Positions 4,275 through 49,639 of a DNA stretch of 64,000 bases are shown in pieces (the first letter of the stretch is position 1; each line of letters starts with the position of its first letter). The stretch covers positions 1 through 64,000 of IMG/VR virus record IMGVR_UViG_3300028883_000032, one strand, 5' to 3'. The notes beneath the pieces were generated by a model. It was not told where the DNA came from. It worked only from the letters and a program-made list of their open reading frames with translations, and ran no database searches. The position numbers and the translations under genes were made by a program.

Positions 4275-4287
4275 CAAAGGAGACCTA

Positions 4288-7026: not shown

Positions 7027-7044
7027 CCGAGTTTGGGTTTTATC

Positions 7045-7072: not shown

Positions 7073-7081
7073 ACATTGGTA

Positions 7082-7110: not shown

Positions 7111-7117
7111 ACAATAA

Positions 7118-7202: not shown

Positions 7203-7224
7203 CAACATTATAATTGGTGCGATT

Positions 7225-7599: not shown

Positions 7600-7601
7600 C
7601 T

Positions 7602-16380: not shown

Positions 16381-16430
16381 CACCGACGCATATAAAATTA
16401 TACCAGCGTTTTTGAAAGCGCATTTAAAGC

Positions 16431-18525: not shown

Positions 18526-18535
18526 GAGTAATAGA

Positions 18536-19372: not shown

Positions 19373-20151
19373 TGTTTTATTCCGACAAATGGGCGTATTT
19401 TAGATTCCAAAGAACTGGATCAAAAATAATTGCTTGGATTCTAATTGAATTAGAAAATGGAGTTGAAAAAAAGGAAGAGCTGTTTACTACAGTAAGGGAA
19501 CCTGAAGCTCTTCGACATAAAGGAAAAGTTTGGATATCAAGTGTAAGACACCCACTCCCATGGAATCATTCTCATTATGACGATTATATATTTGGGCTTC
19601 AGAACCATGTAAGCAGGATATATAATTACCTTGAACCTGTATTTTATACGCCAACCGATCACCGCAATTTTGTAAATTTTGGTCAACATTTAGACTTACT
19701 TTATTCATGTGATCTTGATGAAGAATGGGTAACAGGTCACGGACATCACATAAACCCATATATAATGAATAGCCTAGGCATAGGAGTACAAACATATAAG
19801 TTTCTAGATATGTATTCTAAGTATCATCCGAGGCATTTTTTAGACTTGGGCTACACAATTGATGATTTGCTTGAAGACTATGATAACTATATGGCTATTG
19901 ACGACTTTATCATACACAGTGATGTAGAATTATTTGAGAACACTATGAGTACCCTTACTAGGTGTGGAATTAATTATTCAAATGAAGCTGTGCAGAGAGC
20001 AAAAAAAATGGTTAGAGATAACCCAAAGAGAGTAATTTCATATAAAAAACTATACACACCACAAACAGAAAAACTAGTTTTAGAAAAAGAGCAGTTTATT
20101 ATAAAGAAATTTTTTAAAAATGGATCACGAATTCGCACCCAAAATTATTAA
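19372..20151 (+). CDS. sulfotransferase family 2-like protein
   Basis: YFRFQRTGS and SSVRHP..W..S.Y motifs. Confidence 0.6.
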   Translation: MFYSDKWAYFRFQRTGSKIIAWILIELENGVEKKEELFTTVREPEALRHKGKVWISSVRHPLPWNHSHYDDYIFGLQNHVSRIYNYLEPVFYTPTDHRNFVNFGQHLDLLYSCDLDEEWVTGHGHHINPYIMNSLGIGVQTYKFLDMYSKYHPRHFLDLGYTIDDLLEDYDNYMAIDDFIIHSDVELFENTMSTLTRCGINYSNEAVQRAKKMVRDNPKRVISYKKLYTPQTEKLVLEKEQFIIKKFFKNGSRIRTQNY

Positions 20152-20557
20152 GATTCACAAGAACAAGGACAACAGGGGATTTTTTCAAGAAATACTGAAA
20201 ACCTCTCAAGTACCAGAAAAAATTGAGCAGATTTCTATCTCTGAAACTTATCCGGGAGTTATTAAGGCATTTCATAAACACGAACACCAATGGGATTATT
20301 GGTACTTGATATCGGGAAACATAGAGGCGAAGTTAGTTCATGAAAAGCACCAAATTCCCCTATCATACTATTTATCCGGGGACGACGATGTAATACTAGT
20401 AATACCCCCTTATTGGTACCACGGATACAAAGTTTTAGGTAACACTCCGGCAAAAATGCTATATATGGTTAGCACAGAATATAACCCTGATAGCCCAGAT
20501 GAAGAAAAGATATCTCCGTATTCTTATGGAGTTACGTGGGATACAGAAAACCGATGA
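20120..20557 (+). CDS. dTDP-4-dehydrorhamnose 3,5-epimerase-like cupin
   Basis: DNRGFFQEI, PGVIKAFHKH..QWD, IPP..YHG. Confidence 0.88.
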   Translation: MDHEFAPKIIKIHKNKDNRGFFQEILKTSQVPEKIEQISISETYPGVIKAFHKHEHQWDYWYLISGNIEAKLVHEKHQIPLSYYLSGDDDVILVIPPYWYHGYKVLGNTPAKMLYMVSTEYNPDSPDEEKISPYSYGVTWDTENR

Positions 20558-21318
20558 ATACTAAAATAAAAGATTTTTGGAATACAAGGTCTCTTGGTAA
20601 AAATCCGGGATCTGATGACTATCATATAAAAAATTTGGAGCTTAAAGCACTAATTAAAACTATACGCAGTATAGAAAACTCCCACAGCAATATCGCAGAT
20701 GTTGGGTGTGGAAACGGAGAAACACTTAACAAGCTGTGTGAGGTACTTAATTGTGCGGGTTTTGGGATAGATTATTCCAAAGGAATGGTTGATTCCGCAA
20801 ATAAGTTTGGCGGAGAAATGTTTGTAGAGGACGACATATCCGAAGACTTACAAAAGGACTATTTAGAGTCAAGTGTGGTTTATACGGAAAGATGCTTAAT
20901 AAACATATCACCAGAAAAAAGAAAAAAAGCTTTAGAGAATATTTATAAATTAGTAAAACCTAATGGATTTTATTTAATGATTGAAAGTTTTATCGAACCA
21001 TTAAATAGAATAAATGTAATAAGAGAAAAACTTAATCTGTATAGAATTGAACCTCCGTGGCATAACAGCTTTCTAAAAAGAGACGAAATAGTCAAATTAG
21101 CGACAGATTCGGGTTTTTCATTAATCGGAGAATACACATTCACAAGTTCCTACTACTTTTTGAGTAGAGTTGCTAATGCAAAGCTTTCAAATTTATTTGG
21201 CAGAACTCCCAAATACAACGACTTCTTAAATAATATAGGAGAGCACTTACCGTCTGTTGGGGATTTTGGTCCAGTAAAAATGTTAATTTGGGAGAAAGGT
21301 TGTCTTGAGAACAATTAA
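20554..21318 (+). CDS. class I SAM-dependent methyltransferase
   Basis: ADVGCGNG, GIDYSKGM, TERCLIN. Confidence 0.85.
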   Translation: MNTKIKDFWNTRSLGKNPGSDDYHIKNLELKALIKTIRSIENSHSNIADVGCGNGETLNKLCEVLNCAGFGIDYSKGMVDSANKFGGEMFVEDDISEDLQKDYLESSVVYTERCLINISPEKRKKALENIYKLVKPNGFYLMIESFIEPLNRINVIREKLNLYRIEPPWHNSFLKRDEIVKLATDSGFSLIGEYTFTSSYYFLSRVANAKLSNLFGRTPKYNDFLNNIGEHLPSVGDFGPVKMLIWEKGCLENN

Positions 21319-22405
21319 TTTATATAATCCAAACCTACAACTCCAAGATAAATTAGCAGTAATGGAAGCCCTTAATCTAGATTGGAGTTCTGGACAATAC
21401 TATAAACCGATAGAGCAGTTTGAAGCCGCTTTTGCAAATCGTGTGGGTCGCAAGTATGCGCTAATGACACCAAATTGTACAATAGCAATTGAACTTGCTT
21501 TACGAGCTCGCGGTATAAAAAAAGACAATTTGGTGGCCGTCCCAAACAATACATGGATAGGAAGCACAGCAGGGATACACACTGTTGGAGCTTCTCAAGT
21601 TGTGTGTGATGTTGGGCAACGAAGTTGGTGTTTAGAGGTAACTAATCTTATAGAAGCTGATTATAGATTAAACGCAGTGGTGGTTGTAGATTTATTTGGA
21701 CAAATGCCGGACTATAATTCATTATTAAATTATACAGAAAAACACGGCATATTCGTAATTGAAGACGCTGCGGAAGCATTAGGTTCAACATATAATGGAA
21801 AACCCGCTGGCTCTTTTGGGGATGTTAGTGTCTTCAGTTTTCATCGTTCAAAAACCATCGCTTGTGGAGAAGGTGGAATGGTAGTAACAGATAACGACAA
21901 ACTTTACGAGATGATGTGGACACTGCGCGATCAAGGCAGACCAAAAAGTTGCGAAACCTATAAAAATGAATACCTAGCACATAAATTTATTCCATCAAAT
22001 ATGCAGGCAGCTCTAGGATTAAGCCAGCTTATGAGGTTAGACAGCATTCTAGAACATAAGAGAAGGGTATTTAGGTGGTACCATAAACACATCAATATGG
22101 ACGACAAGTCTCTAACTCCTGATATCCCAGGAGTAAGTAATTCATATTGGGTACCTATTTTAGTATTTAAGGATAACACAATTAATACTGATTTTGTAAT
22201 TAACACATTAGCGAAAAATGGAATTTACACCAGGCGGTGTTTCTACCAACTATCAGAATTACCAGCATACTCAAGAATAGGGTTTTTTAGAAATAATACG
22301 CCTAATTGTAAATGGTTACAAGACCATGCCATTAATTTACCATCTCCGATGGATTTAACAGAAGAAGATGTCGAAAGGATAGCAGGAGTAATCAATATAT
22401 TATGA
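21305..22405 (+). CDS. DegT/DnrJ/EryC1/StrS sugar aminotransferase (perosamine synthase-like)
   Basis: IEDAAEALGS, SFHRSKTIACGEGG. Confidence 0.92.
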   Translation: MRTINLYNPNLQLQDKLAVMEALNLDWSSGQYYKPIEQFEAAFANRVGRKYALMTPNCTIAIELALRARGIKKDNLVAVPNNTWIGSTAGIHTVGASQVVCDVGQRSWCLEVTNLIEADYRLNAVVVVDLFGQMPDYNSLLNYTEKHGIFVIEDAAEALGSTYNGKPAGSFGDVSVFSFHRSKTIACGEGGMVVTDNDKLYEMMWTLRDQGRPKSCETYKNEYLAHKFIPSNMQAALGLSQLMRLDSILEHKRRVFRWYHKHINMDDKSLTPDIPGVSNSYWVPILVFKDNTINTDFVINTLAKNGIYTRRCFYQLSELPAYSRIGFFRNNTPNCKWLQDHAINLPSPMDLTEEDVERIAGVINIL

Positions 22406-27872: not shown

Positions 27873-29726
27873 ATGAATCTTGCCAGTCAAATTTTATCAG
27901 ACATTACGGTGCATATGAAATATGCGCGATACATCCCAGAACTTAATCGCAGGGAAACCTGGGATGAGATCGTAACACGAAATAAAAATATGCATCTTAA
28001 GAAATTTCCAGACTTGGCAGACGAAATCGAGGAAGCTTATACTTTCGTATACGACAAAAAAATACTACCATCTATGCGATCACTACAATTTGGTGGTAAA
28101 CCTATTGAAATAAGCCCTAACAGAATTTATAATTGCAGTTTTGCTCCAATTGATGATTGGCGTGTATTTCATGAAATAATGTTTCTCTTATTAGGTGGGA
28201 CGGGAGTTGGTATTTCTGTACAAAGACACCATGTGGAACAGCTACCTGAAATTGTTAAACCCAACCCACAACGTAAACGCAGATTTCTAATAGGAGATAG
28301 CATAGAGGGGTGGGCTGACGCAGTAAAGGTTTTAATGAAATCGTATTTTTTTGGTGGAAGTACTATTATATTTGATTTTGACGACATTAGACCAAAAGGG
28401 GCTAGATTGGTAACCAGTGGAGGAAAGGCGCCAGGACCACAACCTCTAAAAGAGTGCTTGGTTAAAATAAGAGGCATTCTTGATGAAAAAAATGCTGGGG
28501 ATCAATTAAAACCAATTGAAGCATATGATATAGTTTGTCATATTGCAGACGCCGTATTAGCTGGAGGGATACGCAGAGCAGCATTAATAACACTATTTAG
28601 TGCAACTGATATCGAAATGCTTACAGCTAAAAGTGGTAACTGGAGTGAAAGAAATCCACAAAGAGCCAGATCAAATAATTCCGCAGTATTACTGAGGAGT
28701 TTAATTACTAAAAAATTCTTTGATGCAGTTTGGGACCGTATCATACATAGTGGTTCTGGGGAACCCGGAGTATATTTTACAAACGATAAAGAATGGGGAG
28801 CAAATCCTTGTGTAGAAATAGGTCTGAGGCCTTTTCAGTTTTGTAACTTAGTAACTATAAATTCTAGTAGCTTAGAGTCACAAATTGATTTTAATGACAG
28901 AGCAAGAGCCGCAGCATTTATTGCTACACTTCAGGCATCATATACAGATTTTCACTATCTAAGACCGGTATGGCAACGTACAACAGAAAAAGAAGCTCTA
29001 ATAGGGGTGTCGTTAACCGGAATAGCAGATAAAACAGTATACAGATTTAATAAAGAAGAAGCAGCGATAGTAGTAAAGTCCGAAAATTCAAGAACAGCAA
29101 AGCTAATCGGGATAAATACCGCCGCAAGAACCACCTGTGGTAAACCGGAAGGAACATCTTCTCTAGTCCTAGGTAGTTCTAGCGGATGGGGACGTAGGTC
29201 AGCAAAGAGGTATATCAGAAGATTAAGAATTGGTAAAAATGAAAGCTTATACCCATATTTGTTAGAAAACCACCCAGAATTGGTTGAGGATGAATATTTT
29301 TCTCCACACGACACCGCAGTAATATCAGTACCTCAAGAATCACCATGGGGAGCAATTACTGAAGAAACTGCTTTAGAGTTTATGGAGAGAATAAAAGAGG
29401 GCTATCTGACATGGGTTAAACCAGGACACAGATCTGGATTAAATACCAACAACATTTCTGCCACAGTATTCGTAAAGCCCAAGGAATGGGAATCTGTCGG
29501 TAATTGGATGTGGGAAAATAGGGAGTACTACTGTGGACTCACAGTTCTTCCTCACGACGGCGGGACTTATAAACAAATGCCATTCGAAGAATGTGACAAA
29601 GATACCTATGATAAAATGTTCTCCGTATTACAGGAAATCGATTTAACTAAAATAGTGGAACTATCTGATAATACTGACCTAAAAGGAGAAATTGCTTGTT
29701 CGGGAGGTTCATGCGAATTGGTATGA
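27873..29726 (+). CDS. nrdJ: class II (B12-dependent) ribonucleotide reductase
   Basis: RRETWDE, LPSMRSL, YNCSF, GGIRRAA, NPCVEI, KPEGTSS, C-terminal CSGGSC. Confidence 0.92.
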   Translation: MNLASQILSDITVHMKYARYIPELNRRETWDEIVTRNKNMHLKKFPDLADEIEEAYTFVYDKKILPSMRSLQFGGKPIEISPNRIYNCSFAPIDDWRVFHEIMFLLLGGTGVGISVQRHHVEQLPEIVKPNPQRKRRFLIGDSIEGWADAVKVLMKSYFFGGSTIIFDFDDIRPKGARLVTSGGKAPGPQPLKECLVKIRGILDEKNAGDQLKPIEAYDIVCHIADAVLAGGIRRAALITLFSATDIEMLTAKSGNWSERNPQRARSNNSAVLLRSLITKKFFDAVWDRIIHSGSGEPGVYFTNDKEWGANPCVEIGLRPFQFCNLVTINSSSLESQIDFNDRARAAAFIATLQASYTDFHYLRPVWQRTTEKEALIGVSLTGIADKTVYRFNKEEAAIVVKSENSRTAKLIGINTAARTTCGKPEGTSSLVLGSSSGWGRRSAKRYIRRLRIGKNESLYPYLLENHPELVEDEYFSPHDTAVISVPQESPWGAITEETALEFMERIKEGYLTWVKPGHRSGLNTNNISATVFVKPKEWESVGNWMWENREYYCGLTVLPHDGGTYKQMPFEECDKDTYDKMFSVLQEIDLTKIVELSDNTDLKGEIACSGGSCELV

Positions 29727-30475: not shown

Positions 30476-32785
30476 ATGTCGACTTATGACGTTAATTTTA
30501 GAATACTAAAGCTAAGAAACGAATTAAACGGACTCGGATTATCAAAAAACGCACTTGATCAAACACTTTACAATTGGGTCCAATTTAACAATAAAATAGC
30601 AAACTATTCGTTAAAATTCGGCGGATTGACTCTTATTAAAAAATTGGAATTACCACAGCAGGCTCCAGTATTTAAGAACCTATCCATAGCTTTAAAATGG
30701 GAGACACCGACAGCATTATATTCAGCTGACAGTGCCCAAGATGTAAATATATACATTTTATCAGATAGCTCTAACTTTGGTATCATCCCCACCAACAAAA
30801 TACTAATTATTCCGCCCAAACGAGATTATCACTTTTATAGTCTAACTGAGGCTGTTACAGTTGATGAGGAAAACATTGAAGAGGGGTTTCTTCAGGTTGT
30901 AGATTTTATTAATGGTATTAAAGATGATCTGCTAATTCCTTACAACATGACAAACCTGCTACCAAGCAAAGTACAAACTGAAGTAAGTTTAAGAAAGCAT
31001 TATTACGAAAACGGCCTACCCTTGGTAGACTTTAATAAGATGTGTGAGTATAGTAAAGAGCAACGAGATGAAATTGTAAACAAATGGTGTGAGCTTACTC
31101 TTCATTCCACATTTGAAAAAGCTTTTCCGAATGTATACTCTTACTACAATGATATCAAAAACTATAAATACGAAAACCCAATGTATGGAAGAATAGTAGA
31201 CGTTGCCGAACACAAAGATAATGGTGACAGATACTATATTATCGCTCTCCCAGAAAGAAAGAAGTTGGGGTTGGAAAAAATAGTAATAGAGGGAGTAAAG
31301 AATCTAAAACTAACTTCCGGTAAGATAACATCAAAATCGGAATACTGGCCATACATTGATGTTGGTAGGTATTTGTATTATCGGGTGCCTGAGATAGTAA
31401 TTAACCGTATAAAAGGAGACAGTCCTGGGGATAGGGCCATTAGGACCTATTATTACCATAACGATTATTATAGGACTGGTACACGAGACCCCTTATCAGA
31501 GATTTGGGGGATGTTCATAGACGAAAACCCCCTTCTACCTCAAAACCCAATACCTTTACAAAATCATTTAAATGACGATCACAGAAGAGTACAGGAACAA
31601 AATTTTGTAACCTTGCTAGATAATAGGCAGGTTAAAAGATTAGTTAAACAGCATGAGCAAATTCAGGATCGGCTAAAAAAAGAAGAAAAGCTGGAAAAGC
31701 TTTTAAAAACAAAGTGGGAACATAAATTTGAAATACTCAACGAAGACCCGTCGGCTTCCATACAATTAGATGACATAATATTCACAGGTAAAAGGGCGAT
31801 ATTTAGACCGCCAAACGTAGATGACCCTGAGCAGCCTATTGAATGTTCTGCCATAAAAGTAACCGACGTATTAAGAAGTCTTCTTTCTAAGCATTCTCCT
31901 GATCAAATATCGTTTCTTATGTATTTAGAGAATCTTTCTGCACATATTATTAAAAAAGTAGTAGAAGAGGGTAAAACTAATAATGTTACGGGAGTAATAG
32001 GAAACATTTCCTATAAATTACATTTTACCGAGACAGAAACAAAAACTGGCAGTTGCATGAGAAGGTACTTTATAAATGGGTATCGTGTAAACAAAGATGA
32101 AATGGCTCAAATACTAGATGCAGGGCTTTGTTTCAGAAGTACTCCAGAGTTTAATTCTTGGTTAAAAACCGTATCTAGATATTCGTTAAGAATACACGGA
32201 TTGATACAAAGAGGACTTGAGGCATCAGTTACGGATTCTTTAGCCTTTGACAACAACAAAAAATTCAATATAAAACTAACCTTGGAAAGACACGGTAGTA
32301 GGAATTATATTAAAAATGAAACCGATCTTTTTCAGATTCACGATATAAATAGGTTAGAAACAATCCAACGAGCGCGTCAGATGGATCATATAATATCCAT
32401 ACTTACCGATCCAAAAATATCAGATATTGGATACGAACATGTTACAAAAATACTCAAGGATGCCAGAAAGTACTACGAAGATGCTATTGAAAAAAGTCAA
32501 GCACTGCTTAATAAAACAATAGAGAAATATGGAGTTGTTAAAGATACAAAAAATGGCATGAATGGGTATGTAGTACAAGGAAAATTAAGATCGTATTTCA
32601 TAGAGCACAGTAGCAACGCAACCGTTTATTCATTGCCTAAAATGAGGCCTCTTTGCATAGTTGAAAAAACAGGCCACGGCAGAGATCCAAATGACCAAGT
32701 TGGCATGGATAAAATATATAATAGAATAATGATGCTGCGAAATGACCATCTTGTATTAGATAAAGTTCACACTTTAAACTTTTAA
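30476..32785 (+). CDS. large hypothetical protein heading the Ubl/JAB/E1 module 1
   Basis: 769 aa; coiled-coil segments; C-terminal VQGKLRSY.I..LCIV..D..ND domain with a single Cys. Confidence 0.7.
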   Translation: MSTYDVNFRILKLRNELNGLGLSKNALDQTLYNWVQFNNKIANYSLKFGGLTLIKKLELPQQAPVFKNLSIALKWETPTALYSADSAQDVNIYILSDSSNFGIIPTNKILIIPPKRDYHFYSLTEAVTVDEENIEEGFLQVVDFINGIKDDLLIPYNMTNLLPSKVQTEVSLRKHYYENGLPLVDFNKMCEYSKEQRDEIVNKWCELTLHSTFEKAFPNVYSYYNDIKNYKYENPMYGRIVDVAEHKDNGDRYYIIALPERKKLGLEKIVIEGVKNLKLTSGKITSKSEYWPYIDVGRYLYYRVPEIVINRIKGDSPGDRAIRTYYYHNDYYRTGTRDPLSEIWGMFIDENPLLPQNPIPLQNHLNDDHRRVQEQNFVTLLDNRQVKRLVKQHEQIQDRLKKEEKLEKLLKTKWEHKFEILNEDPSASIQLDDIIFTGKRAIFRPPNVDDPEQPIECSAIKVTDVLRSLLSKHSPDQISFLMYLENLSAHIIKKVVEEGKTNNVTGVIGNISYKLHFTETETKTGSCMRRYFINGYRVNKDEMAQILDAGLCFRSTPEFNSWLKTVSRYSLRIHGLIQRGLEASVTDSLAFDNNKKFNIKLTLERHGSRNYIKNETDLFQIHDINRLETIQRARQMDHIISILTDPKISDIGYEHVTKILKDARKYYEDAIEKSQALLNKTIEKYGVVKDTKNGMNGYVVQGKLRSYFIEHSSNATVYSLPKMRPLCIVEKTGHGRDPNDQVGMDKIYNRIMMLRNDHLVLDKVHTLNF

Positions 32786-32797
32786 CCATTATTAGTA

Positions 32798-33619
32798 ATG
32801 TACAAACACGACGAACCACAGAAAATCAAATTTAGTGTTGTATCCGTAAATGGGGACGATGAATTTGAAATGTTTCCAGCGGATGCTTTGGAAGAAATGA
32901 AACGTCTAGTAAATAACCATGGAAAATGGTTATATGAAGACGGTGACATAGTAAATGTAATGGATCTTACTCCTGGAGATCTAAACCCGAATAGAGATTA
33001 CGAACTTGGAAATCTGTTAAAGGGCGGTGTAGCCATAGATGAATCATGTCGGGAGACAGAAAGCGATGGGTGCTGTTGTGAACCAGAAGGTCGCTGTGAT
33101 GAGACTTCAAAACAATTAGAACTTGGAGATCCACAAAAGTATTTTTACTCCACACAACTTAATACAGTGGATAATCAGGAATTTGATTTTATGATCTGGG
33201 TCAATGATGAAAAGAAAGAAATTACTGGCCAACTACGTAAGGATCGCGGAAGATTTTATGTAGCTAATAGAGACGACATCGCAGAGATACTATATTCTGT
33301 ACTACACAATCTGAGTGTTGTGGAGACTCGAAAAATAGCAGAACCATTGAACGTGCCGTCATATGAATTTCAATTCCGTAATACTCGTACACGTATTGCT
33401 GAAGGATACAACTTCTTTTTTGATGTTTCTGGTGATCCAATGATAACCTTAAACTACGACATTAAAGATAACATACTGACCGTTGGGATTAATAACAACT
33501 TAAGGTTTAGAGCCATGAAGCATCAACGAGAACTAAAAGCTTTTGTTGGTAAGCAAATGGTAGCATTCGGACAACAGTATGTACAGGACATGGCGAAGCT
33601 AACAGGCCTTCGCGGCTAA
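32798..33619 (+). CDS. putative ubiquitin-like (beta-grasp) domain ending in GG, fused to C-terminal domain
   Basis: 77-aa N-terminal unit ending ELGNLLKGG, Cys-rich acidic linker, ~190-aa C-domain; adjacent to JAB and E1. Confidence 0.55.
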   Translation: MYKHDEPQKIKFSVVSVNGDDEFEMFPADALEEMKRLVNNHGKWLYEDGDIVNVMDLTPGDLNPNRDYELGNLLKGGVAIDESCRETESDGCCCEPEGRCDETSKQLELGDPQKYFYSTQLNTVDNQEFDFMIWVNDEKKEITGQLRKDRGRFYVANRDDIAEILYSVLHNLSVVETRKIAEPLNVPSYEFQFRNTRTRIAEGYNFFFDVSGDPMITLNYDIKDNILTVGINNNLRFRAMKHQRELKAFVGKQMVAFGQQYVQDMAKLTGLRG

Positions 33620-33644
33620 TAATATTACCATTTAACGGGAGTGT

Positions 33645-33679
33645 GGTGGGTTAGATTAAGCTCTAACCCACCTTTTTTT
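33645..33679 (+). terminator. rho-independent terminator
   Basis: GGTGGGTTAGA-ttaagc-TCTAACCCACC + T7. Confidence 0.75.
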
Positions 33680-33685
33680 AATGTT

Positions 33686-34117
33686 ATGAAAAGACAAATT
33701 TACATAAAAAACAACTTAATAGAGCACTTTGATGTATTAGGAAGAGCATACTACCCACAAGAAATTTGTGGCATATTAACTGGGCGAAACTTAAATGGAT
33801 TGTATACAGTACGTAATTTTCACTGGATAGATAACATCAGTAAGGAGCCCGGTAAATGGGATTTTACAATGGATCCCGAACAATATATGGATGTAGTAAG
33901 GGCCTTTATTAGTTCCAAATTCTCGGAAGTAGTGGGTATTTTTCACACTCACCCCAATGGTCCAAGTGTTCCTTCACTTATAGACACGAAGTATGCAACC
34001 CAAGCAGGAGATAAGATACCGTGGGTAATATATTCTGTAAGAGATAAACAGACTCAATCTTGGTACTATAATGGTAAAGAATTTGAACTTATGGATGTAG
34101 AGGAAATATATGAGTAA
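33686..34117 (+). CDS. JAB/MPN (Mov34) metalloprotease
   Basis: PQEICGIL..HTHPNGPSVPSLID (E..HxH..S..D). Confidence 0.92.
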   Translation: MKRQIYIKNNLIEHFDVLGRAYYPQEICGILTGRNLNGLYTVRNFHWIDNISKEPGKWDFTMDPEQYMDVVRAFISSKFSEVVGIFHTHPNGPSVPSLIDTKYATQAGDKIPWVIYSVRDKQTQSWYYNGKEFELMDVEEIYE

Positions 34118-34733
34118 AGTAAAAGTAGCTATTGTTGGTCTTGGGGGCATTGGTTCTTGGCTAGTCAACCATATTAATTGGTTGGTAAATAGGGGCCAAA
34201 TAGACACGTCATTAATTGAATTTCATGGATATGATGATGATGAAGTGGAAGACAAAAATACACGCTATCAATGTTTTGAGCCAGAAGATATATTTGACTC
34301 TAAAGCAGCTGCTCTTGAAATTAGATTCTTACCCGTTAGTGGAGAACACTGGTTTTTTGGACACGAAGAAAGAATTACAAATGTGGGAAAACAGCTTGGA
34401 GATGCAAACCTTATTATCTCGGCTGTCGATAACCTCAAGTTTAGAAAGGCTCTTTTTGAGTTCTGCTTGGATAAAGAGATCCACTGGTTTGATTTTCGTT
34501 CAGAAGGACGAGCTATAATGGCTCTAACCAAACACCCCTCCAACAATGTTGAAAAGCTTGAAATGTTTACTGCTGGAGATCAAGAAGAGAACGGATCATG
34601 TCAATTAGCAGCCGATTTGGAAAAAGGTTTAGTGCAACTTGGCAATCAAATTATTGCTCAAATAGGGGCTCAATACCTGCTAAACTGGTGGAGAGACATC
34701 CCTAATCCAGCACAATTTATAAGGAAGTTTTAA
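34110..34733 (+). CDS. ThiF/E1-like adenylating enzyme
   Basis: GLGGIGSW, DDDEVEDKNTRYQ, K, AVDNLKFR, D.RSEG, candidate catalytic Cys GSCQ. Confidence 0.9.
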   Translation: MSKVKVAIVGLGGIGSWLVNHINWLVNRGQIDTSLIEFHGYDDDEVEDKNTRYQCFEPEDIFDSKAAALEIRFLPVSGEHWFFGHEERITNVGKQLGDANLIISAVDNLKFRKALFEFCLDKEIHWFDFRSEGRAIMALTKHPSNNVEKLEMFTAGDQEENGSCQLAADLEKGLVQLGNQIIAQIGAQYLLNWWRDIPNPAQFIRKF

Positions 34734-41716: not shown

Positions 41717-42559
41717 ATGAAGTTTACCTTTTTAGGCGTTGGGGGCATGTTCGCAAAAACTCTCGGCCATACCAACATACTAGTAGAGTTTACAAGCGGG
41801 TATAAGTTACTAATTGACTGTGGAAATAGAGCACCGCTTGAACTATACCAGCGAGGATTATACCCACAAGACATTAACGGGTATTATATATCCCACCTGC
41901 ATGACGACCATGTTGGAGGAATACAAGAATTGGGGCTGTTTGCATATTTCCACCCCAATTGCCATTTCAAGCCTGATTTGTTTATTGCCCAACAACTTCG
42001 TGGGGAAATTTGGAATAACTGTTTAATGGCCGGAATGTCCAGTATTGAAGGCAGTGTTATGTCCCTAGAAGATTACTTCAATGTTGTGTCTATTCCCCCT
42101 AATGGTTCTTTTGGCGTAGTAAAAGACCGCAGAGACGACTCTGAAAGCAGCGTCTTGGCCATTGATGCTAGGTTTGATGGTTGGAAATTATCCCCCGTTC
42201 AAACAGCACATTTCATGAATGGAAGAATAATTGTTCCATCCTTTGGGTTATTGTTTGAAAAAGGGGACGACAAACCAACCATTTTCATTACAACTGATAC
42301 CCAATTCGCACCCCATCAGATACAAGTGTTTTACGAAAAAGCTGATGTCATTTTCCAAGACTGCGAAGCGGCACCATATAAAAGCGGAGTTCACGCTCAT
42401 TTTGATGAGCTTGTCACTCTACCAGAAAAAATACGTAGGAAAATGTGGTTTGTACATTATCCTGATACTGTTCTCGAAGATATAAACACTTGGAAAATGA
42501 AGGCAAATGGAAGCGGGTTCCTTGGGTTTGTAAAAAAAGGACAAGAATTCGAGTTTTAA
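41717..42559 (+). CDS. MBL-fold metallo-hydrolase (RNase Z-like)
   Basis: FLGVGG, LIDCG, SHLHDDHVGG, TTDT, HAH, VHY. Confidence 0.88.
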   Translation: MKFTFLGVGGMFAKTLGHTNILVEFTSGYKLLIDCGNRAPLELYQRGLYPQDINGYYISHLHDDHVGGIQELGLFAYFHPNCHFKPDLFIAQQLRGEIWNNCLMAGMSSIEGSVMSLEDYFNVVSIPPNGSFGVVKDRRDDSESSVLAIDARFDGWKLSPVQTAHFMNGRIIVPSFGLLFEKGDDKPTIFITTDTQFAPHQIQVFYEKADVIFQDCEAAPYKSGVHAHFDELVTLPEKIRRKMWFVHYPDTVLEDINTWKMKANGSGFLGFVKKGQEFEF

Positions 42560-42560
42560 C

Positions 42561-43307
42561 ATGAACGAAAACGAAGCAAAGACTCAACTGATCTTGAAGG
42601 GGTATGGTGGGTCCATTGCTTACGGAACAAATACCCCATCAAGTGACGTTGATTTAAGGGGGGTATTTATTCCTCCAAAGGAGTACTGGGTCGGGTTAAA
42701 GAGTGTGGATCAAATAAATTTTTCCGCAGAAGACACGACTTTCTACTCTTTACAAAAATTCTTTATGTTGGCTATAAAAGCTAACCCAAACATCCTTGAA
42801 CTATTATGGTTACGAGATAATCATTACATTTGGAAAGACGTACCAAAAGATTTCCGTAGCCTAGGAAGAAAATTGATAAGTAATAGGAATCTTTTTCTTT
42901 CAAAAAACATAAAACACACATATACCGGCTATGCCTATTCTCAACTTCATAGAATGGATAAGTTAAACAAGAACGTAGCACAAAATGCAGACCGTACAGC
43001 TCGCGTAGAGAAATTCGGGTATGATACTAAAAATGCTATGCATTTGATACGGCTACTACGTACTGGTCTGGAGATTCTTACGGAAGGCGAATTACATGTA
43101 TTTCGAGAAGATGCCCGAGACCTTTTAGCCATCAAGGATGGGAAGTATACTTACGATGAGTTGGTGGAAAAAGCCCAGCGTTACGACGAACTCATTGAAG
43201 AGGCATATGTTCGCAGCCCATTGCCACATAAACCGGATTTTAATGCTATTCAGAATCTACACATGGAGATGGTGGAAGAAGCTCTATCCATTTTAAACAA
43301 AAGGTAA
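42561..43307 (+). CDS. predicted nucleotidyltransferase (pol beta-like superfamily)
   Basis: GSIAYGTNTPSSDVDLRGVF, NPNILE, GYDTKNAMHLIRLL. Confidence 0.85.
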   Translation: MNENEAKTQLILKGYGGSIAYGTNTPSSDVDLRGVFIPPKEYWVGLKSVDQINFSAEDTTFYSLQKFFMLAIKANPNILELLWLRDNHYIWKDVPKDFRSLGRKLISNRNLFLSKNIKHTYTGYAYSQLHRMDKLNKNVAQNADRTARVEKFGYDTKNAMHLIRLLRTGLEILTEGELHVFREDARDLLAIKDGKYTYDELVEKAQRYDELIEEAYVRSPLPHKPDFNAIQNLHMEMVEEALSILNKR

Positions 43308-44666: not shown

Positions 44667-44738
44667 GGCGCGATCGTCCAGTGGTCAGGACATCGGTTTT
44701 TCATGCCGGGAACCGGGGTTCAATTCCCCGTCGCGCTA
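44667..44738 (+). tRNA. tRNA-Glu(UUC)
   Basis: Cloverleaf, loop TT-TTC-AT. Confidence 0.92.
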
Positions 44739-44764
44739 CTATTTAATTTGGAAGACAAAGAGAA

Positions 44765-46372
44765 ATGAATCCAGAAGACGAAAGAAATACTACTTATACT
44801 CTTGGAAATATCGATCAATTTAGGTTCCAAATTGAACCTAACTTCACTGTTCGAGATGTAGAGCGGGCGAGACAACAAATAAATGCACTCGCTGCCCAAC
44901 ATTGGGGTGAAAGGTTACGTACACGACAAGAAGAGATTTTTGCACAATATCTAAACAGGCCAAATACCGAAGCACCTCAACAAGAGCTGCAAGCAGACCT
45001 GATTGGAGAGCTACGTCGCAATATGGAACACCAACAAACCGTACGTGACGATATGGCAGATGCTGCCCGTTGGGCATATGACGTGGGGGTTAGAGCAGGG
45101 CAGCTTGCTCAAGAAGAACAAATTGAAGAACAAGCCGTCGATAACCCAAATTATTTTGCTACAGAAGAAGAGTATACAAGGTATTTAGAAGAGCTGGATA
45201 CGGATACGCCTCCCTTGGTTGTGGAGGCCCCAAACCCAGAATTAATAAATATAACAAATGCCCCTGAAAAAGGAGAAACGACAACGATGGCAATAAATGT
45301 GGAAATACGCACAGCGAATAAATTTTCAGATCTTCAAAGACAAAAGATCAGAGAAATCGCTTCTGACGTGTTGGCGCCAGTAGTTGGTAAAAAAATTGTG
45401 ATAGCGCACAGAGGTAAAACTCAAAAACCAATCGAAGACGGGTGTTTCCATATTCATTGTTGGTCCTCCGTAAGAGGTAGACGAGTATATACTCCGCCCA
45501 GTGAATTATGGATATTTACTGTACAAGATCGATCAAAATCTTACAAACCGTCTGGAGACGGTTTAGCACTTAAAGCTGGACGATGGTCACACAGTGAGTT
45601 GGTAGGAAATAACCTCTACATTCATCACAATATATTTGCTGATCCCAATCGCCCATCGACGTATGATCTTGAATTGTTTAAGAAAATACTTGATGCCGTT
45701 ACACGCGCATACACAGACACTACCCCAGAATTGGATGAACTGGCAAAAACGAATTATGTAAATTTCTGCTTAAAGAGGAAAGACGATTCCATTAAACAGC
45801 TGGAAGACCGTAACGCTAAGGCACGTCAAGCTTTACAAAGTTCGGTACAAGCATCTCTACAGAAAATACGTTTGGCCAAACAGTCTCAATTTGATTTAAC
45901 TCAAGCACTGAACTCCAAACCGGCAGATATGCGTAAAAAATTTGAAATTGAGTTTGAACGTTTGTTGGAACATCCAAAAATTGTAAAAGTTAGAGTAACT
46001 AGCGGCAAGTTCATGGTTGACACGGAAACTTTATACTGTACAGATCCGCGTAGTAAGAAAGTACACGAAATCGGTAAGTTTTGCATCGAAATCAATCCGA
46101 ATACAGGTTCAATACGGTGGGATAATTTAACCCGTAAAGTGGACGGTATGCGTCGCAATATGAACGGTCCACATATTTGGGCAGATGGTCAGGCATGTAT
46201 GGGAAATACAAGTAGTTCGTTTCATTCACTTATCGCTAACTACGAACTAGCAATTGCCGCCCACCTTGCCATCGAATTTGTGGAAAGTGTAAATGTCAAC
46301 GACGGGGCCGGGGAACGTATTAATAATTGGCCTTTAGCCCCCGAAAAAATGCAAGCTAAAAAGGGTAAATAA
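44765..46372 (+). CDS. coiled-coil + prokaryotic E2-like conjugating enzyme (active Cys)
   Basis: C-terminal GPHIWADGQACMGN (PH..G..C.G; Cys478) followed by N.ND..G...WP; possible second start at 45287. Confidence 0.75.
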   Translation: MNPEDERNTTYTLGNIDQFRFQIEPNFTVRDVERARQQINALAAQHWGERLRTRQEEIFAQYLNRPNTEAPQQELQADLIGELRRNMEHQQTVRDDMADAARWAYDVGVRAGQLAQEEQIEEQAVDNPNYFATEEEYTRYLEELDTDTPPLVVEAPNPELINITNAPEKGETTTMAINVEIRTANKFSDLQRQKIREIASDVLAPVVGKKIVIAHRGKTQKPIEDGCFHIHCWSSVRGRRVYTPPSELWIFTVQDRSKSYKPSGDGLALKAGRWSHSELVGNNLYIHHNIFADPNRPSTYDLELFKKILDAVTRAYTDTTPELDELAKTNYVNFCLKRKDDSIKQLEDRNAKARQALQSSVQASLQKIRLAKQSQFDLTQALNSKPADMRKKFEIEFERLLEHPKIVKVRVTSGKFMVDTETLYCTDPRSKKVHEIGKFCIEINPNTGSIRWDNLTRKVDGMRRNMNGPHIWADGQACMGNTSSSFHSLIANYELAIAAHLAIEFVESVNVNDGAGERINNWPLAPEKMQAKKGK

Positions 46373-47734
46373 ATGTTTGATTTTACCGCACCTATATCCC
46401 CGGGTAGTGTATTTTGTTTTTTGTCTAATTTGTCAAAAAAACAACTAGATAAATTGGACAGCATGGGTGCTACTCCAATGCCTTTTGATCTTGATGGTGA
46501 ATCCGGGATTATTGTTGATGGCTCACAGATGGGTGATATAATACGTGAATTAGACCTAGACATCCTGACAACTGATGCTACTACCTATGATGGTGTATAC
46601 AACATTTTGTGGAGACCAAAAAAAGACGGTAGAGGAAAGGCAGAAGGAAACTCAAGAATTATTTTTGAGAATTCTGAAGTTTGTAGGTGGAATGGAAAAC
46701 TTCCAACCGCTGTCATGGAAAGCTCTATTGAAAGGTTTCTTCTTCCATCTTTAAGTAAAGACGTAAAGGTTCACCTATATGTTCCGCACGGGAGTAACCA
46801 TGGCTTAATAAATAATGGGGAATTTAACATATTTATTTGGTCGGGATTGGGACGAAAGGCAGCACTGACACCGAAGAAAATGTGGGGAATACCCGTTGAC
46901 TGTAAAGATAAACCGTTTGATTATTCAGGAAGCGGGTTAGCCATTTATGAATCAGGTGGAAACATCGTAGGCGAGTTAGTACAAAACAACCTCTACATTT
47001 TTCACGATCTTGTACACATGGGTACTCAGCGCGAAAAACAAATCTTCGAGCACATACTGGAAGAAGTTGTGTATCTAACACAAAACCCAGAAGCCGGTAT
47101 TGATAGGCAGGCTCAGCATTTAGCAGAAGTATTGGCCGCTGAATATCAAAATACTTATAAAGTGAGGGAACAGCAGTTAACCACAATTGAGGATGATATT
47201 CAAAGATATAAAGCCGTGCTAGTTGAGAAGATTAGAGCAGCGGATTCTGCTAAAATGATGGTTTTGGGAGCTGAAGAAGCTCTACGAGATATTCGAAGTG
47301 TGGCCAAGGAACAATTTCTGATACTGCGCAGCAACGACAAAATTGAACGTATTGAACCGTCTGGAGATTGTGTAACAATTTACACCAAACGGTTAATTTG
47401 TACTCACCCCGTAAGTCAAAAACAATACGGCATTGGAAACTTTAAAATTATTATTCATTTAACCGGTCATCCAACTATGGTTGAATGGCACAACTTGACT
47501 AGACAGAGTGATTGCCAAGCACCCCATGTTGAACTATCAGGTTATCCCGTAGCGGGAATGACGGAAGAGATGTTCTTGGAGTTACTCGGAAATTATCAAA
47601 TAGGAATAATCGGAAACTTAGCAATTCAGTTTATAGAAACGGTAGATCCTACCCATCCAACAGCTGAACGCTTGAAAAAGTTTCCCCTTCTTAAGGAATC
47701 GATAGAAACTGATGGCAAAGAAAAAACCAAATAA
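46373..47734 (+). CDS. paralogous coiled-coil + E2-like protein lacking the catalytic Cys (UEV-like)
   Basis: Aligns with the previous gene (ELVQNNLYIFH vs ELVGNNLYIHH; WHNLTR vs WDNLTR); APHVELSGYPVAG has Val at the Cys position. Confidence 0.7.
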   Translation: MFDFTAPISPGSVFCFLSNLSKKQLDKLDSMGATPMPFDLDGESGIIVDGSQMGDIIRELDLDILTTDATTYDGVYNILWRPKKDGRGKAEGNSRIIFENSEVCRWNGKLPTAVMESSIERFLLPSLSKDVKVHLYVPHGSNHGLINNGEFNIFIWSGLGRKAALTPKKMWGIPVDCKDKPFDYSGSGLAIYESGGNIVGELVQNNLYIFHDLVHMGTQREKQIFEHILEEVVYLTQNPEAGIDRQAQHLAEVLAAEYQNTYKVREQQLTTIEDDIQRYKAVLVEKIRAADSAKMMVLGAEEALRDIRSVAKEQFLILRSNDKIERIEPSGDCVTIYTKRLICTHPVSQKQYGIGNFKIIIHLTGHPTMVEWHNLTRQSDCQAPHVELSGYPVAGMTEEMFLELLGNYQIGIIGNLAIQFIETVDPTHPTAERLKKFPLLKESIETDGKEKTK

Positions 47735-48605
47735 AAAAAGAGCTGCCCAGTACTTTATACCTCACGATTTTAAAGAAGAGGTAGAAGTGCTTAACCAGTC
47801 TTCTTACTGTATATGGATGACCCCGCTAGCCTTTCAAAAAATGTGGCATTTTGTCGATATTTGTAGTCAAGAAGTTGGCTGGCTTGGATCGGTTGAACGA
47901 GAGGGAAGAAATTTCATTATAACCGATGTTTTCATGTTTGAGCAAGAAGTTACAGGGACTACAACATCTCTCGATGAAGCTGGCCAGACTAAACTTATGG
48001 AAAATTTTCTGGCACAAGAGAATGGTACAGAGCTTTATAACTCTATAAGGTTCTGGGGACATAGTCATGTTAACATGGGAACAACTCCAAGTGGTCAAGA
48101 TGAAACCACAATGAAGGAATTCGAAGAAAATGGCTGTGCGTGGTTTATAAGAGGCATATTCAACAAAAGAGGACGAGCACAGTTTGATATATTTTTATAC
48201 GACGAAGGTGTACGAGTAAACGATGTTCGTTGGGCAATTCTTGTTGAAATGCCGGAATTTGATATCCGCAAAGAGTTGGAAACTGAAATACAAAAGAAGG
48301 TTACCACAAAAAAGTATGTATATCCTTCGTACGCAGGTGGATGGGGAGGAGGAAATGGCTATGACCCTACCAAGAGGACTGGGAATGGTACTGTTAACCA
48401 CTCAGTCCACCCTACTGTAGGTCAAGGGAACCGCTCATCGTCACAGCAGGGAAATGTCTGGGACGAATTTTATACGGCAAATCCAAGCGGAACTCTTGAC
48501 CTAGATGAAGACGACGAAGGAACAACCTTTTTCAACAATAATGGAGTTGTTGAAGAACTAAAACCAGAAACTAAAAAAGAGACAAAAAAGGACAAAACTA
48601 AATGA
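47712..48605 (+). CDS. JAB/MPN-family metalloprotease
   Basis: QEVGWLG..EQEVTG..WGHSHVNMGTTPSGQD; low-complexity tail. Confidence 0.88.
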   Translation: MAKKKPNKKRAAQYFIPHDFKEEVEVLNQSSYCIWMTPLAFQKMWHFVDICSQEVGWLGSVEREGRNFIITDVFMFEQEVTGTTTSLDEAGQTKLMENFLAQENGTELYNSIRFWGHSHVNMGTTPSGQDETTMKEFEENGCAWFIRGIFNKRGRAQFDIFLYDEGVRVNDVRWAILVEMPEFDIRKELETEIQKKVTTKKYVYPSYAGGWGGGNGYDPTKRTGNGTVNHSVHPTVGQGNRSSSQQGNVWDEFYTANPSGTLDLDEDDEGTTFFNNNGVVEELKPETKKETKKDKTK

Positions 48606-49294
48606 TCGATCCTTTACGTCACTTGGCTATTTTTGATCCTGATGCCTTTGGTCCCCGACGAGTTGATGTAATAGGTGTGGGTGCAACTGGATCAAAAGTT
48701 GTGTTGGAACTTGCAAAACTCGGCATAGTTAACATTCACGTATGGGATTATGACAAAGTCGAAGAACACAATGTTCCCAACCAAGTTTTTGGAAATGATC
48801 ATGTTGGGATGTTCAAAGTTGACGCCATATCAAAAATTGTCAAGGCACAAACTGGTATTGACTTAGTAACTCATAACGAAGAAGTAGACGGTACTCAAAC
48901 TTTTGGTGATATAGTATTCTTGCTAACCGACACCATGAAAAGCCGTAAATCAATCTTTGAGAGGGGCATTAAATATAAATTTAATGTCAAATTAATGATT
49001 GAAACGCGGATGGGAAAAGACAGCGGGCAGATATACTCCATCATTCCGACAAAACCGGATCACATCAAAAATTGGGAAAATTCCCTGTTTAGCGATGATG
49101 ACAAAGATACTGAAGTATCTCTATGTGGAAGTACAATAACTGTTGGGTCAACTGCCGGAATAATTTCGGGCCTAGCGGTTTGGAAAGTCATTGAATGGCT
49201 TCAACACGAAACCGGCAAACTGGAAAATGGAATTGCTAACGAAACAATGATTGATATTTCCCCCAAGTTAGCAGTTTATCAAAACAAATATTAA
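48602..49294 (+). CDS. ThiF/E1-like activating enzyme
   Basis: GVGATGS, WDYDKVEEHNVPNQ, KV, TDTMKSR, ETRMG, candidate catalytic Cys SLCG. Confidence 0.92.
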   Translation: MIDPLRHLAIFDPDAFGPRRVDVIGVGATGSKVVLELAKLGIVNIHVWDYDKVEEHNVPNQVFGNDHVGMFKVDAISKIVKAQTGIDLVTHNEEVDGTQTFGDIVFLLTDTMKSRKSIFERGIKYKFNVKLMIETRMGKDSGQIYSIIPTKPDHIKNWENSLFSDDDKDTEVSLCGSTITVGSTAGIISGLAVWKVIEWLQHETGKLENGIANETMIDISPKLAVYQNKY

Positions 49295-49314
49295 CTCAGG
49301 AGTAGAATTTCAAG

Positions 49315-49524
49315 ATGGAACCTATTCAAGTACGTGTAGGAACAATTCCTGGTGGAGTCTCCGAATTTGCAATCATAGATGCAACAGTTCGTGGAGCACT
49401 TACAGCAGCAGGCCTTGAGGCGGACGGTTACAAAATCAATGTAAACGGCGTGGCAGCTAACTTAGACACACCGTTACGAGATGGTGATAATGTTCTTCGT
49501 GTTCGCAAGGTTGTTGGTAACTAA
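49315..49524 (+). CDS. ubiquitin-like (ThiS/MoaD-fold) protein ending GN
   Basis: 69 aa; ATVRGAL..INVNG..LDTPLRDGDNV..KVVGN. Confidence 0.85.
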   Translation: MEPIQVRVGTIPGGVSEFAIIDATVRGALTAAGLEADGYKINVNGVAANLDTPLRDGDNVLRVRKVVGN

Positions 49525-49531: not shown

Positions 49532-49566
49532 AGAAGAGCGGAAATATTTATATACCGCTCTTTTTT
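49532..49566 (+). terminator. rho-independent terminator
   Basis: AAGAGCGG..CCGCTCTT + T run after the Ubl gene. Confidence 0.75.
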
Positions 49567-49639
49567 ACCCCAAAATGGAATAAGAATATAGCAGGGACTC
49601 TTAAGGTAGAGGCCCGTAAAGCTAAATTGGGAGGATAGC

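Follow-up and report, generated by a model that had tools for sequence, protein, structure and literature searches.

A five-gene phage operon predicted to encode a ubiquitin-like tagging pathway of a new family

Can an uncultured 207-kb phage carry a complete set of enzymes for attaching a small ubiquitin-like protein (Ubl) to other proteins, and, if so, is this set a peculiarity of that phage? The question was raised by five tightly packed genes at positions 44765-49524 of the window, i.e., the 64,000-nucleotide stretch (positions 1 to 64,000) of IMG/VR record IMGVR_UViG_3300028883_000032. The sequence-only reading had described them as an operon for an E2-like protein, its paralogue, a JAB protease, a ThiF/E1 with a candidate catalytic Cys and a beta-grasp protein ending VVGN, closed by a terminator, and this observation was confirmed. 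The accompanying interpretation was only partly supported, as discussed below.

The five genes and the terminator

All five open reading frames lie on the + strand and are translationally coupled: the TAA stop codon of g1 is followed at once by the ATG of g2 in the same frame, g2 and g3 overlap by 23 nt, g3 and g4 overlap by 4 nt, and g4 and g5 are separated by 20 nt. An independent Logan assembly of a marine-sediment run reproduced the 4,760 bases with no differences; the only run holding the sequence is a DNA run, and there is no RNA evidence for the operon. It ends at an intrinsic-terminator-like structure (49532-49570, + strand) consisting of a 10-bp stem with a 13-nt loop followed by a T-run, with a folding energy of -12.8 kcal/mol (z -5.0; 0 of 200 shuffles as stable), which a simple terminator scanner missed because of the long loop.

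The first gene, g1 (44765-46372, 535 aa), encodes the catalytic-type E2-like protein, with an acidic N-terminal region (about residues 1-175), an alpha/beta “E2N” domain (about 178-300), a long coiled coil (about 320-385) and a predicted UBC-like C-terminal domain (about 386-531). The candidate catalytic Cys478 (46196-46198) is preceded by P469-H470 (46169-46174) and G475, and a second conserved Cys, Cys425, is located at 46037-46039. The motif A-P-H-V-x3-G-x-A-C-L of g1, which is conserved in 42 active-type domains, is collinear with the canonical E2 motif H-P-N-V-x3-G-x-I-C-L, in which the HPN-type element lies about eight residues before the catalytic Cys; here, His replaces the Asn. AF2 models of g1 reached pLDDT 89.9 and, for the C-domain, pLDDT 91.4 with pTM 0.85. 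The modeled C-domain comprises one helix, six strands, a loop and four helices, against the helix, four-stranded antiparallel meander, active-site loop and C-terminal helices of the UBC fold. Almost all of the top 40 Foldseek matches in the PDB were E2 enzymes, aligned over nearly their full length (136-180 columns, probability up to 0.94), but these matches to a predicted structure, although consistent, were individually weak (TM 0.40-0.50, best E 0.012, none reaching E 0.001). Structure hits in the Atlas went to UQ_con clusters at TM 0.49-0.50. At the same time, sequence profiles found no E2 in the PDB or Pfam: g1 and g2 gave no Pfam hit at E ≤ 0.1, including UQ_con and the Prok-E2_A-E families, none of 90 diverse family members gave a hit at E ≤ 0.001, and only weak language-model leads were obtained.

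The second gene, g2 (46373-47734, 453 aa), is a paralogue of g1 (BLASTP, 28% identity over 367 aa, E 5e-33) and retains the full architecture of the family, namely, the N-terminal domain, E2N (HMM hit, E 3e-63), the coiled coil and the UBC-like domain (E2C, E 2e-45), but it carries Val in place of Cys478. It grouped with the degenerate E2b clade, although on a long branch, and is probably a non-catalytic partner.

The third gene, g3 (47712-48605, 297 aa), encodes a JAMM/JAB metallopeptidase with all catalytic residues: E54 and H117-S-H119-x7-S127-x2-D130 (motif at 48060-48101). The five residues are 100% conserved in 33 orthologues and align with the motif of Rpn11, the best solved-structure relative (E 1.8e-4); the PADLOC JAB model also matched (E 1.8e-4). 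The C-terminal roughly 100 residues are of low complexity and are not conserved.

The fourth gene, g4 (48602-49294, 230 aa), encodes a minimal single-domain E1 (Pfam ThiF, E 5e-22) with the Gly-rich ATP loop G25-x-G-A-x-G30 (48674-48691) and conserved Asp/Arg residues. Its only Cys, C175 (49124-49126), is 97% conserved in 33 orthologues. The closest solved proteins are UBA5 (E 1.4e-5), and C175 lines up with the UBA5 catalytic Cys that precedes the long helix. The PRTRC ThiF equivalog model TIGR03736 gave only 36.5 bits against a cut-off of 144.75, which does not support membership in the PRTRC system.

The fifth gene, g5 (49315-49524, 69 aa), encodes a ubiquitin-like beta-grasp protein ending Gly68-Asn69 (49516-49521). 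The Pfam ThiS match was below threshold (E 0.0033), whereas a family profile hit SAMP2 (E 6e-5), PF1061, H. volcanii SAMP2, ThiS, MoaD and TtuB.

Distribution of the cassette in phages and bacteria

The framing of the operon as a phage peculiarity needs correcting. The same cassette was found in at least 13 viral contigs and in genomes of Patescibacteria and Melainabacteria, and the four gene families stay together, in several gene orders, in more than 40 independent loci, an arrangement far beyond chance. The E2-like family comprises about 2,800 clusters. No Pfam, NCBIfam, PADLOC or PHROG model exists for it, and literature searches returned no paper on it, so the claim of the sequence-only reading that the system is undescribed was supported.

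The Gly-Asn terminus of the modifier is conserved across about 30 loci. In other loci, the modifier is often encoded as a tandem poly-Ubl, each unit of which also ends Gly-Asn. The terminal Gly is always followed by one or two variable residues (N, A, Q, NN, NS, G) or by a linker and another unit, as expected for a precursor that a peptidase must open. Pairs of catalytic and degenerate E2-like proteins recur, and in one locus (L021) the two are fused. In Melainabacteria, a gene for a ClpC-type unfoldase directly follows the cassette as a fixed neighbor, and the family occurs in several paralogous copies per genome; in a 742-kb Paceibacterota contig, the family sits among housekeeping genes.

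The window contains a second JAB/ThiF pair (JAB 33641-34117, ThiF 34110-34733), and the two E1/JAB pairs are indeed very different subtypes, as had been proposed. However, this other module has no recognizable Ubl or E2, so the further proposal of two orthogonal Ubl pathways in one genome is not established.

A predicted conjugation pathway and its alternatives

Most likely, though with only moderate confidence, the five genes encode a working, self-contained E1-E2-Ubl-JAB conjugation pathway of a previously undescribed family. In this view, the JAB peptidase g3 would remove the single C-terminal Asn of the pro-modifier g5 to expose Gly68, and in relatives with a tandem polyprotein, the same enzyme would cut out the units. 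The UBA5-like E1 g4, probably a homodimer, would adenylate Gly68 and take the modifier onto Cys175 as a thioester, from which it would pass to Cys478 in the UBC-like domain of g1. Then, g1 would transfer it to lysines of target proteins without a separate E3, with the non-catalytic N-terminal domains choosing the targets, while g2 would act as a UEV-like partner, probably paired with g1 through the coiled coils. The JAB may also reverse the modification. Note that the gene set, the catalytic residues with their conservation and, by prediction only, the fold assignments are what the analysis shows, whereas every chemical step, the g1-g2 pairing and the absence of an E3 are inferred without experimental support. 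The sequence-only reading further supposed that host or phage proteins are tagged for counter-defence, takeover or assembly, but no target, E3 or host was identified; our leading guess is tagging of host proteins, possibly to feed them to a Clp-type unfoldase/protease.

Two alternatives survive about equally, and both are unlikely. In the first, g4 alone would conjugate g5, as UbaA does with SAMPs, and g1 and g2 would be non-catalytic adaptors or scaffolds whose conserved Cys/His residues bind a metal and which bring substrates or partners, for example an unfoldase, to the modifier. The conserved set of C425, H434, H470 and C478 would suit a metal site, several of these residues are lost together in degenerate paralogues, the fold matches to E2 are only moderate, and SAMP2, the closest solved relative of the modifier, works without an E2, as do archaeal SAMPs in general and Urm1; the E2-like protein may, therefore, not be a thioester carrier. 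However, the motif around C478 is collinear, residue for residue, with the canonical E2 active-site loop, and in the model C478 sits just before the helix that follows the active-site Cys in E2s. Moreover, some degenerate paralogues keep C478 while losing C425 and H470, and g2 does the reverse, which is not the pattern predicted by loss of a single four-ligand site.

In the second, the chemistry would be the same but the role would be defence or competition, with the phage-borne cassette working like the bacterial Bil system and tagging structural proteins of competing phages during co-infection rather than host proteins. Characterized E1-E2-Ubl-JAB operons are antiviral (Bil: 10.1101/2023.09.04.556158; PMC11601596), and the cassette sits in an accessory region near an Apyc1-like anti-Pycsar gene. 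Against this stand the housekeeping surroundings in the Paceibacterota contig, the fixed ClpC neighbor and paralogous copies in Melainabacteria, and the absence of any PADLOC model matching the E2 or the Ubl.

The least likely alternative is a sulfur-carrier system, in which g5 would be activated by g4 and converted to a C-terminal thiocarboxylate donating sulfur to a small molecule or tRNA, with the JAB only unmasking the Gly (as in CysO/Mec+ or QbsC/D/E) and the E2-like proteins having another role: a ThiS-like carrier and a ThiF-family adenylase (minimal ThiF/MoeB-type by Pfam and NCBIfam) are indeed present, the relatives of the modifier include sulfur carriers, and JAB + ThiF + ThiS trios are described in sulfur assimilation (PMC1779556), but no sulfur donor or sulfur-accepting biosynthetic gene (rhodanese, ThiG/H, MoaE, TtuA, sulfate assimilation) appeared among the Pfam-annotated neighbors or recurred in the neighbor clustering of 38 loci, the E2-like gene with its conserved Cys-containing motif is always present, and the tandem poly-modifier genes and the ClpC neighbor fit protein tagging better than cofactor synthesis.

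A more far-reaching version of the tagging hypothesis is unlikely but could not be excluded: the family would be a bacterial and phage counterpart of the ubiquitin-proteasome logic, with the Gly-capped modifier made from polyprotein precursors, written by E2/pseudo-E2 pairs, read by a ClpC-type unfoldase/protease and erased by an Rpn11-like JAB. Large phages would carry their own writer set, with divergent targeting domains, to send chosen host proteins (for example, defence or takeover targets) to degradation, which would make them the first bacterial viruses known to bring a complete ubiquitin-like tagging machine.

E1-E2-Ubl-JAB conjugation in prokaryotes is so far characterized as bacterial antiviral immunity (CBASS type II, Bil) or remains functionally open (Bub). 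Here, the same logic appears in a different, very large family carried by many large phages and by Patescibacteria and Melainabacteria, lineages with small or poorly understood proteostasis systems, and, because the family has no domain model, current annotation pipelines do not recognize it. If active, this five-gene system would be tractable for asking what a virus of bacteria does with protein tagging, would offer a possible new route to regulated proteolysis in bacteria and would add data on how E2 enzymes and modifier precursors evolved.

Comparison with known systems

Type II CBASS (Cap2/Cap3) and the Bub (6E/DUF6527) operons share bacterial conjugation machinery of the E1/E2/JAB type with the cassette. 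CBASS uses an E1-E2 fusion acting on a CD-NTase rather than a Ubl, whereas E1 and E2 are separate genes here, PADLOC E1-E2 (Cap2) models matched only the Rossmann segment of g4 (residues about 12-117), and no CD-NTase was detected among the immediate neighbors scanned. Bub uses Ser/Tyr oxyesters and a DUF6527 serine protease, with E1 and E2 lacking catalytic Cys (PMC11601596), whereas the E1 and E2 Cys residues are conserved here and no DUF6527 hit was found in or beside the operon.

Archaeal sampylation (SAMP/UbaA/JAMM), and TtuB in Thermus, likewise combine a small ThiS-like modifier with a JAMM peptidase and a ThiF-type E1, and the best solved hits of the modifier profile are SAMP2 proteins, the top one being 5lda_B. 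This entry is a SAMP2-JAMM1 complex. However, sampylation has no E2, whereas an E2-like protein is an invariable member here, and SAMPs end Gly-Gly rather than Gly plus one or two capping residues.

UBA5, the minimal homodimeric E1 of the UFM1 pathway, resembles g4 in that g4 has no separate Cys domain and its conserved Cys lies at the start of the long helix after the crossover loop, as Cys250 does in UBA5. At the same time, the cassette has no UFM1-like modifier and no UFC1-type E2, and g4 lacks the C-terminal UFM1/UFC1-binding tail of UBA5.

Several features were thought typical of eukaryotes: tandem head-to-tail modifier genes with an extra residue after the last Gly, as in polyubiquitin precursors; catalytic and Cys-less E2 pairs, as in Ubc13-Mms2 (E2-UEV), complexes of which were among the best fold matches; a UBA5-like E1; and an Rpn11-like JAB. 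As a further parallel, an AAA+ unfoldase gene follows the cassette in Melainabacteria. At the same time, there is no sequence-level membership in the UQ_con or ubiquitin families, no RING or HECT E3, and the unfoldase is ClpC-type rather than proteasomal. These parallels may be convergent.

In the Bil (bacterial ISG15-like) type I/II operons, the same four functions (BilA Ubl, BilB E2, BilC JAB, BilD E1) likewise sit in one operon, without an E3, with Cys-based chemistry (inferred for the present cassette) and a JAB-type peptidase. However, BilA has two fused beta-grasp domains and ends in Gly (10.1101/2023.09.04.556158), whereas g5 is a single domain ending Gly-Asn, in a family where the modifier is often encoded as a polyprotein. 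[quoted passage not shown] Finally, the E2-like protein described here is 400-880 aa long with extra domains and a coiled coil, is often paired with a degenerate copy, and is borne by phages and by Patescibacteria and Melainabacteria.

The operon in its genomic setting

The five ORFs of the operon were found exactly at the positions assigned to them by the sequence-only reading, which had placed an E2-like gene (g1), its paralogue (g2), a JAB gene (g3), an E1 gene (g4) and a ubiquitin-like modifier gene (g5) at 44765-49524; the feature is real and its annotation in that reading was correct. The window comprises the first 64 kb of the 206,856-bp IMG/VR contig IMGVR_UViG_3300028883_000032, so that window and contig coordinates are identical. 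All long ORFs lie on the + strand, 21 tRNA genes are present, and the GC content is 36-44% with no break at the operon. The only public sequencing run that holds the stretch is a DNA run, a marine-sediment metagenome, and therefore provides no evidence of transcription; its independent Logan assembly reproduces 44765-49524 with no differences at about 44x word depth.

The g1 gene is preceded by tRNA-Glu (44667-44739), and its TAA stop is followed immediately by the g2 ATG in the same frame (46370-46375). The g2/g3 and g3/g4 pairs overlap by 23 and 4 nt, respectively, and g5 starts 20 nt after g4. A 10-bp stem with a 13-nt loop and a T-run follows g5 (-12.8 kcal/mol, z -5.0), and this structure was missed by a generic terminator scanner only because its loop limit is 8 nt. 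Read-through of g1 into g2 was considered, since the two genes share one frame, but was rejected: the stop is TAA, whereas the potential amber suppressor tRNA of the window (4202-4275; called tRNA-Pyl by ARAGORN), one of the 21 tRNA genes, has anticodon CTA, which reads UAG. TAG ends 9 of 55 long ORFs, and removing TAG as a stop lengthens ORFs no more than removing TGA or TAA does, so there is no clear recoding in this window.

At 41717-43307, an Apyc1-like metallo-beta-lactamase of the anti-Pycsar family (Pfam E 4e-24) lies 2 kb upstream of the operon and is directly followed by an RlaP-type nucleotidyltransferase (E 1e-22), which makes this a likely counter-defence neighbourhood. Farther upstream, a cluster at 14053-22405 contains two family-2 glycosyltransferases, several methyltransferases including a C-methyltransferase, a dTDP-sugar isomerase/cupin and a DegT-type aminotransferase, suggesting that the phage makes a modified sugar. 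The class II ribonucleotide reductase (27873-29726) is 62.6% identical to a protein of Microcystis phage Mel-JY01; however, only two other window ORFs match the first 100 kb of that genome, so the genomes are not closely related and no host was inferred. Megablast of the operon against 50,697 phage records gave no match, and tblastn of g1 gave one weak hit. The ThiF genes of cultured Xanthomonas, Erwinia and Flavobacterium phages resemble g4 at about 30%, but their neighbours match none of the cassette HMMs built in this work, so they do not belong to this system.

A second JAB/E1 pair, module 1, is located at 30476-34733 and consists of a 769-aa protein, a 273-aa protein whose last residue is Gly, a Prok-JAB (33641-34117; Pfam E 4e-15; related to Cap3-type and phage tail-protein JAB families) and a 207-aa ThiF protein (34110-34733). 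The E1 of this module is extremely distant from g4, and no Ubl or E2 is recognisable beside it; the 273-aa protein upstream of the JAB might be the substrate in the manner of CBASS. The interpretation offered in the sequence-only reading was thus supported only in part: the E1s and JABs of the two modules are indeed distinct subtypes, but the proposal that the genome runs two orthogonal Ubl pathways is not established.

Predicted components of the cassette

The g4 product is a ThiF-family protein (Pfam E 5e-22), and its closest solved relatives are all human UBA5 (E 1.4e-5), the minimal E1 whose catalytic Cys250 lies in the adenylation domain at the start of the long helix after the crossover loop (PMC2888440). 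The only Cys of g4, C175, lines up with that UBA5 Cys in a collinear second alignment segment that is not significant on its own, and it is conserved in 97% of 33 orthologues. The g3 product has no Pfam hit and matches Rpn11 chains best in the PDB (E 1.8e-4), with the H-x-H-x7-S-x2-D motifs aligned; E54, H117, H119, S127 and D130 are invariant in 33 orthologues. The g5 product scores below threshold against ThiS, but a 32-member family profile hits SAMP2 (E 6e-5), PF1061, Haloferax SAMP2, ThiS, MoaD and TtuB, so it is a ThiS/SAMP-type beta-grasp protein.

The g1 and g2 products are paralogues (28% identity over 367 residues, E 5e-33), and searches of Pfam, PHROGs, PADLOC and NCBIfam gave nothing meaningful for either of them. 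Sequence-profile searches of the PDB were equally unproductive, since the whole-protein profile returned only coiled-coil noise and the C-domain profile returned one chance hit. An AF2 model of g1 residues 175-535, built on 31 homologues (pLDDT 89.9), shows an alpha/beta domain (E2N), a helix of about 60 residues and a C-terminal domain, and the latter, when modelled alone, reaches pLDDT 91.4 and pTM 0.85. The top 40 PDB matches of this C-terminal domain model are, with one exception, ubiquitin-conjugating enzymes (UBE2H, UBE2R2, Ubc13, UBE2L6, Ube2S, UbcH10, Ube2W, UbcH5), aligned over 136-180 columns with probability up to 0.94 and TM 0.40-0.50, but no E-value is below 0.012. The ESM Atlas structure search gives UQ_con clusters at TM 0.49-0.50. 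The conserved loop A-P-H-V-x3-G-x-A-C-L-G-N is collinear with the classical H-P-N-V-x3-G-x-I-C-L, and its Cys (C478 in g1) lies just before the helix that follows the active-site Cys in E2s. We therefore accept a diverged UBC fold as likely, although it is not proven. For the E2N domain, only weak leads to UEV/UBC-like families (BRE, Prok-E2_D, UFC1, UQ_con) were obtained, at scores of 0.47 or less.

In g2, Val occupies the position of the Cys, while Pro-His and the other conserved Cys are kept. The g1 product lacks the N-terminal domain of roughly 90 residues that most family members, including g2, have, and carries in its place an acidic, low-complexity region of about 175 residues (44765-45289) for which no relatives were found.

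Distribution of the family and variation among loci

A word-indexed search found 37 relatives of the E2-like protein, and a full profile search of 1.84 billion cluster representatives found 2,819 at E <= 0.001 and 519 at E <= 1e-30. None of 90 diverse members hits any Pfam family, and the nearest Atlas clusters are unnamed and mostly labelled viral. Genomic contexts, together with scans of IMG/VR and GTDB genomes analysed with our own HMMs, show the same cassette in every locus whose sequence extends far enough. The viral carriers are at least 13 distinct viral contigs of 34-395 kb, plus a terminase-bearing ENA contig, and the cellular carriers are MAGs of Saccharimonadota, Paceibacterota/Parcubacteria and Melainabacteria/Obscuribacterales, plus a few others. 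A cellular location is clear in a 742-kb Paceibacterota contig, where the neighbours are recG, endonuclease V, malic enzyme and pilus genes. One 188-kb viral contig (locus L008, 1-9316) carries two cassettes of this family about 3 kb apart, the first with a two-unit modifier ending Gly-Ala. Gene order varies, being E2-JAB-E1-Ubl in Patescibacteria and in this phage and Ubl-E2a-E2b-JAB-E1 or Ubl-JAB-E1-E2a-E2b in Melainabacteria, whereas the membership does not. In the E1 and E2 trees the phage sequences remain on long, unresolved branches, so no donor can be named.

Four features of these loci bear on the mechanism. First, the modifier ends Gly-Asn with the stop codon directly after in about 30 loci, while more distant viral versions end Gly-Ala, Gly-Gln, Gly-Asn-Asn, Gly-Asn-Ser or Gly-Gly, so that the constant feature is a Gly capped by one or two residues. 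Second, in many loci the modifier is encoded as 2-4 tandem units, each ending Gly-Asn followed by a short linker. In L005 (10833-12457), a locus on a phage-like contig, there are at least 7 near-identical 72-residue units, each ending Gly-Asn-Gly-Gly-Pro-Gly, although this run is broken into three reading frames and represents either a real frameshifted array or an assembly problem in the repeats. Together, these two features would require a processing peptidase, which would explain the invariable JAB.

Third, E2-like genes often come in pairs. E2a has the LYC and A-P-H...A-C-L-G-N motifs, whereas E2b is shorter, with Ala in place of the first Cys, Arg/Thr/Tyr/Asn in place of the His, and frequent loss of the second Cys. 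In L021 (16-2139), an Obscuribacteraceae relative, the catalytic-type and degenerate UBC-like domains are fused in a single 708-aa ORF. In a domain tree the degenerate copies form one group (SH-aLRT 88) that includes g2, but g2 sits on a very long branch and its placement is unsure.

Fourth, in all nine Melainabacteria loci of the Ubl-E2a-E2b-JAB-E1 order that extend far enough (L018, L024, L025, L027, L031, L032, L035, L038 and L039), the gene after E1 encodes a ClpC-type double-ring AAA+ unfoldase (Clp_N, AAA, AAA_lid_9, AAA_2, ClpB_D2-small; 10989-13460 in L027), and the JAB proteins there carry long extra regions (350-620 aa). No such gene lies next to the phage or Patescibacteria cassettes. 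In L001, a locus on a Paceibacterota-related contig, a 640-aa AAA protein (5749-7671) lies divergently next to the cassette but is not ClpC-like by BLAST, and in the locus L002 a ClpP gene lies about 5 kb away. The present contig was absent from the best 80 of 572 viral hits of a ClpC scan, which is uninformative about Clp genes elsewhere in this phage.

Inferred mechanism and relation to known systems

The simplest reading of these data is a complete conjugation pathway. In this view, the JAB would unmask Gly68 of g5, the UBA5-like E1 would adenylate it and take a thioester on C175, the modifier would pass to C478 of g1, and g1 would transfer it to targets selected by its non-catalytic domains, with g2 acting as a UEV-like partner. 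What the analysis itself demonstrates is limited to the parts list, the residues and the folds as predicted, while all of the chemistry is inferred. The ClpC linkage suggests a degradation-tag function in at least one cellular lineage, but extending that function to the phage is speculation.

Among the alternatives, E2-independent conjugation with g1 and g2 as adaptors is possible, because C425, H434, H470 and C478 could bind a metal, and a Bil-like antiviral or competitive role cannot be excluded for the phage copies. A sulfur-carrier role lacks any linked sulfur genes among the annotated neighbours of the cassette.

Full-text literature searches gave no description of this family or of phage-borne complete Ubl cassettes, although not all journals were covered and a prior description cannot be excluded. 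On present evidence, the cassette is best described as a new and widespread form of prokaryotic ubiquitin-like conjugation system, notable for being carried by many large phages. It would work like Bil but fails the defining features of Bil, namely, a two-domain Ubl ending in Gly and an IAD-AAD-CYS E1 (PMC11601596; 10.1101/2023.09.04.556158). It is not Bub, because there is no DUF6527 hit in or beside the operon and the Cys residues are retained; it is not CBASS type II, because there is no E1-E2 fusion and no CD-NTase was detected among the immediate neighbours of the cassette; and it is not PRTRC, because the score is far below the cut-off. Individually, its components resemble UBA5, Rpn11, SAMP2 and Ubc13/Mms2.
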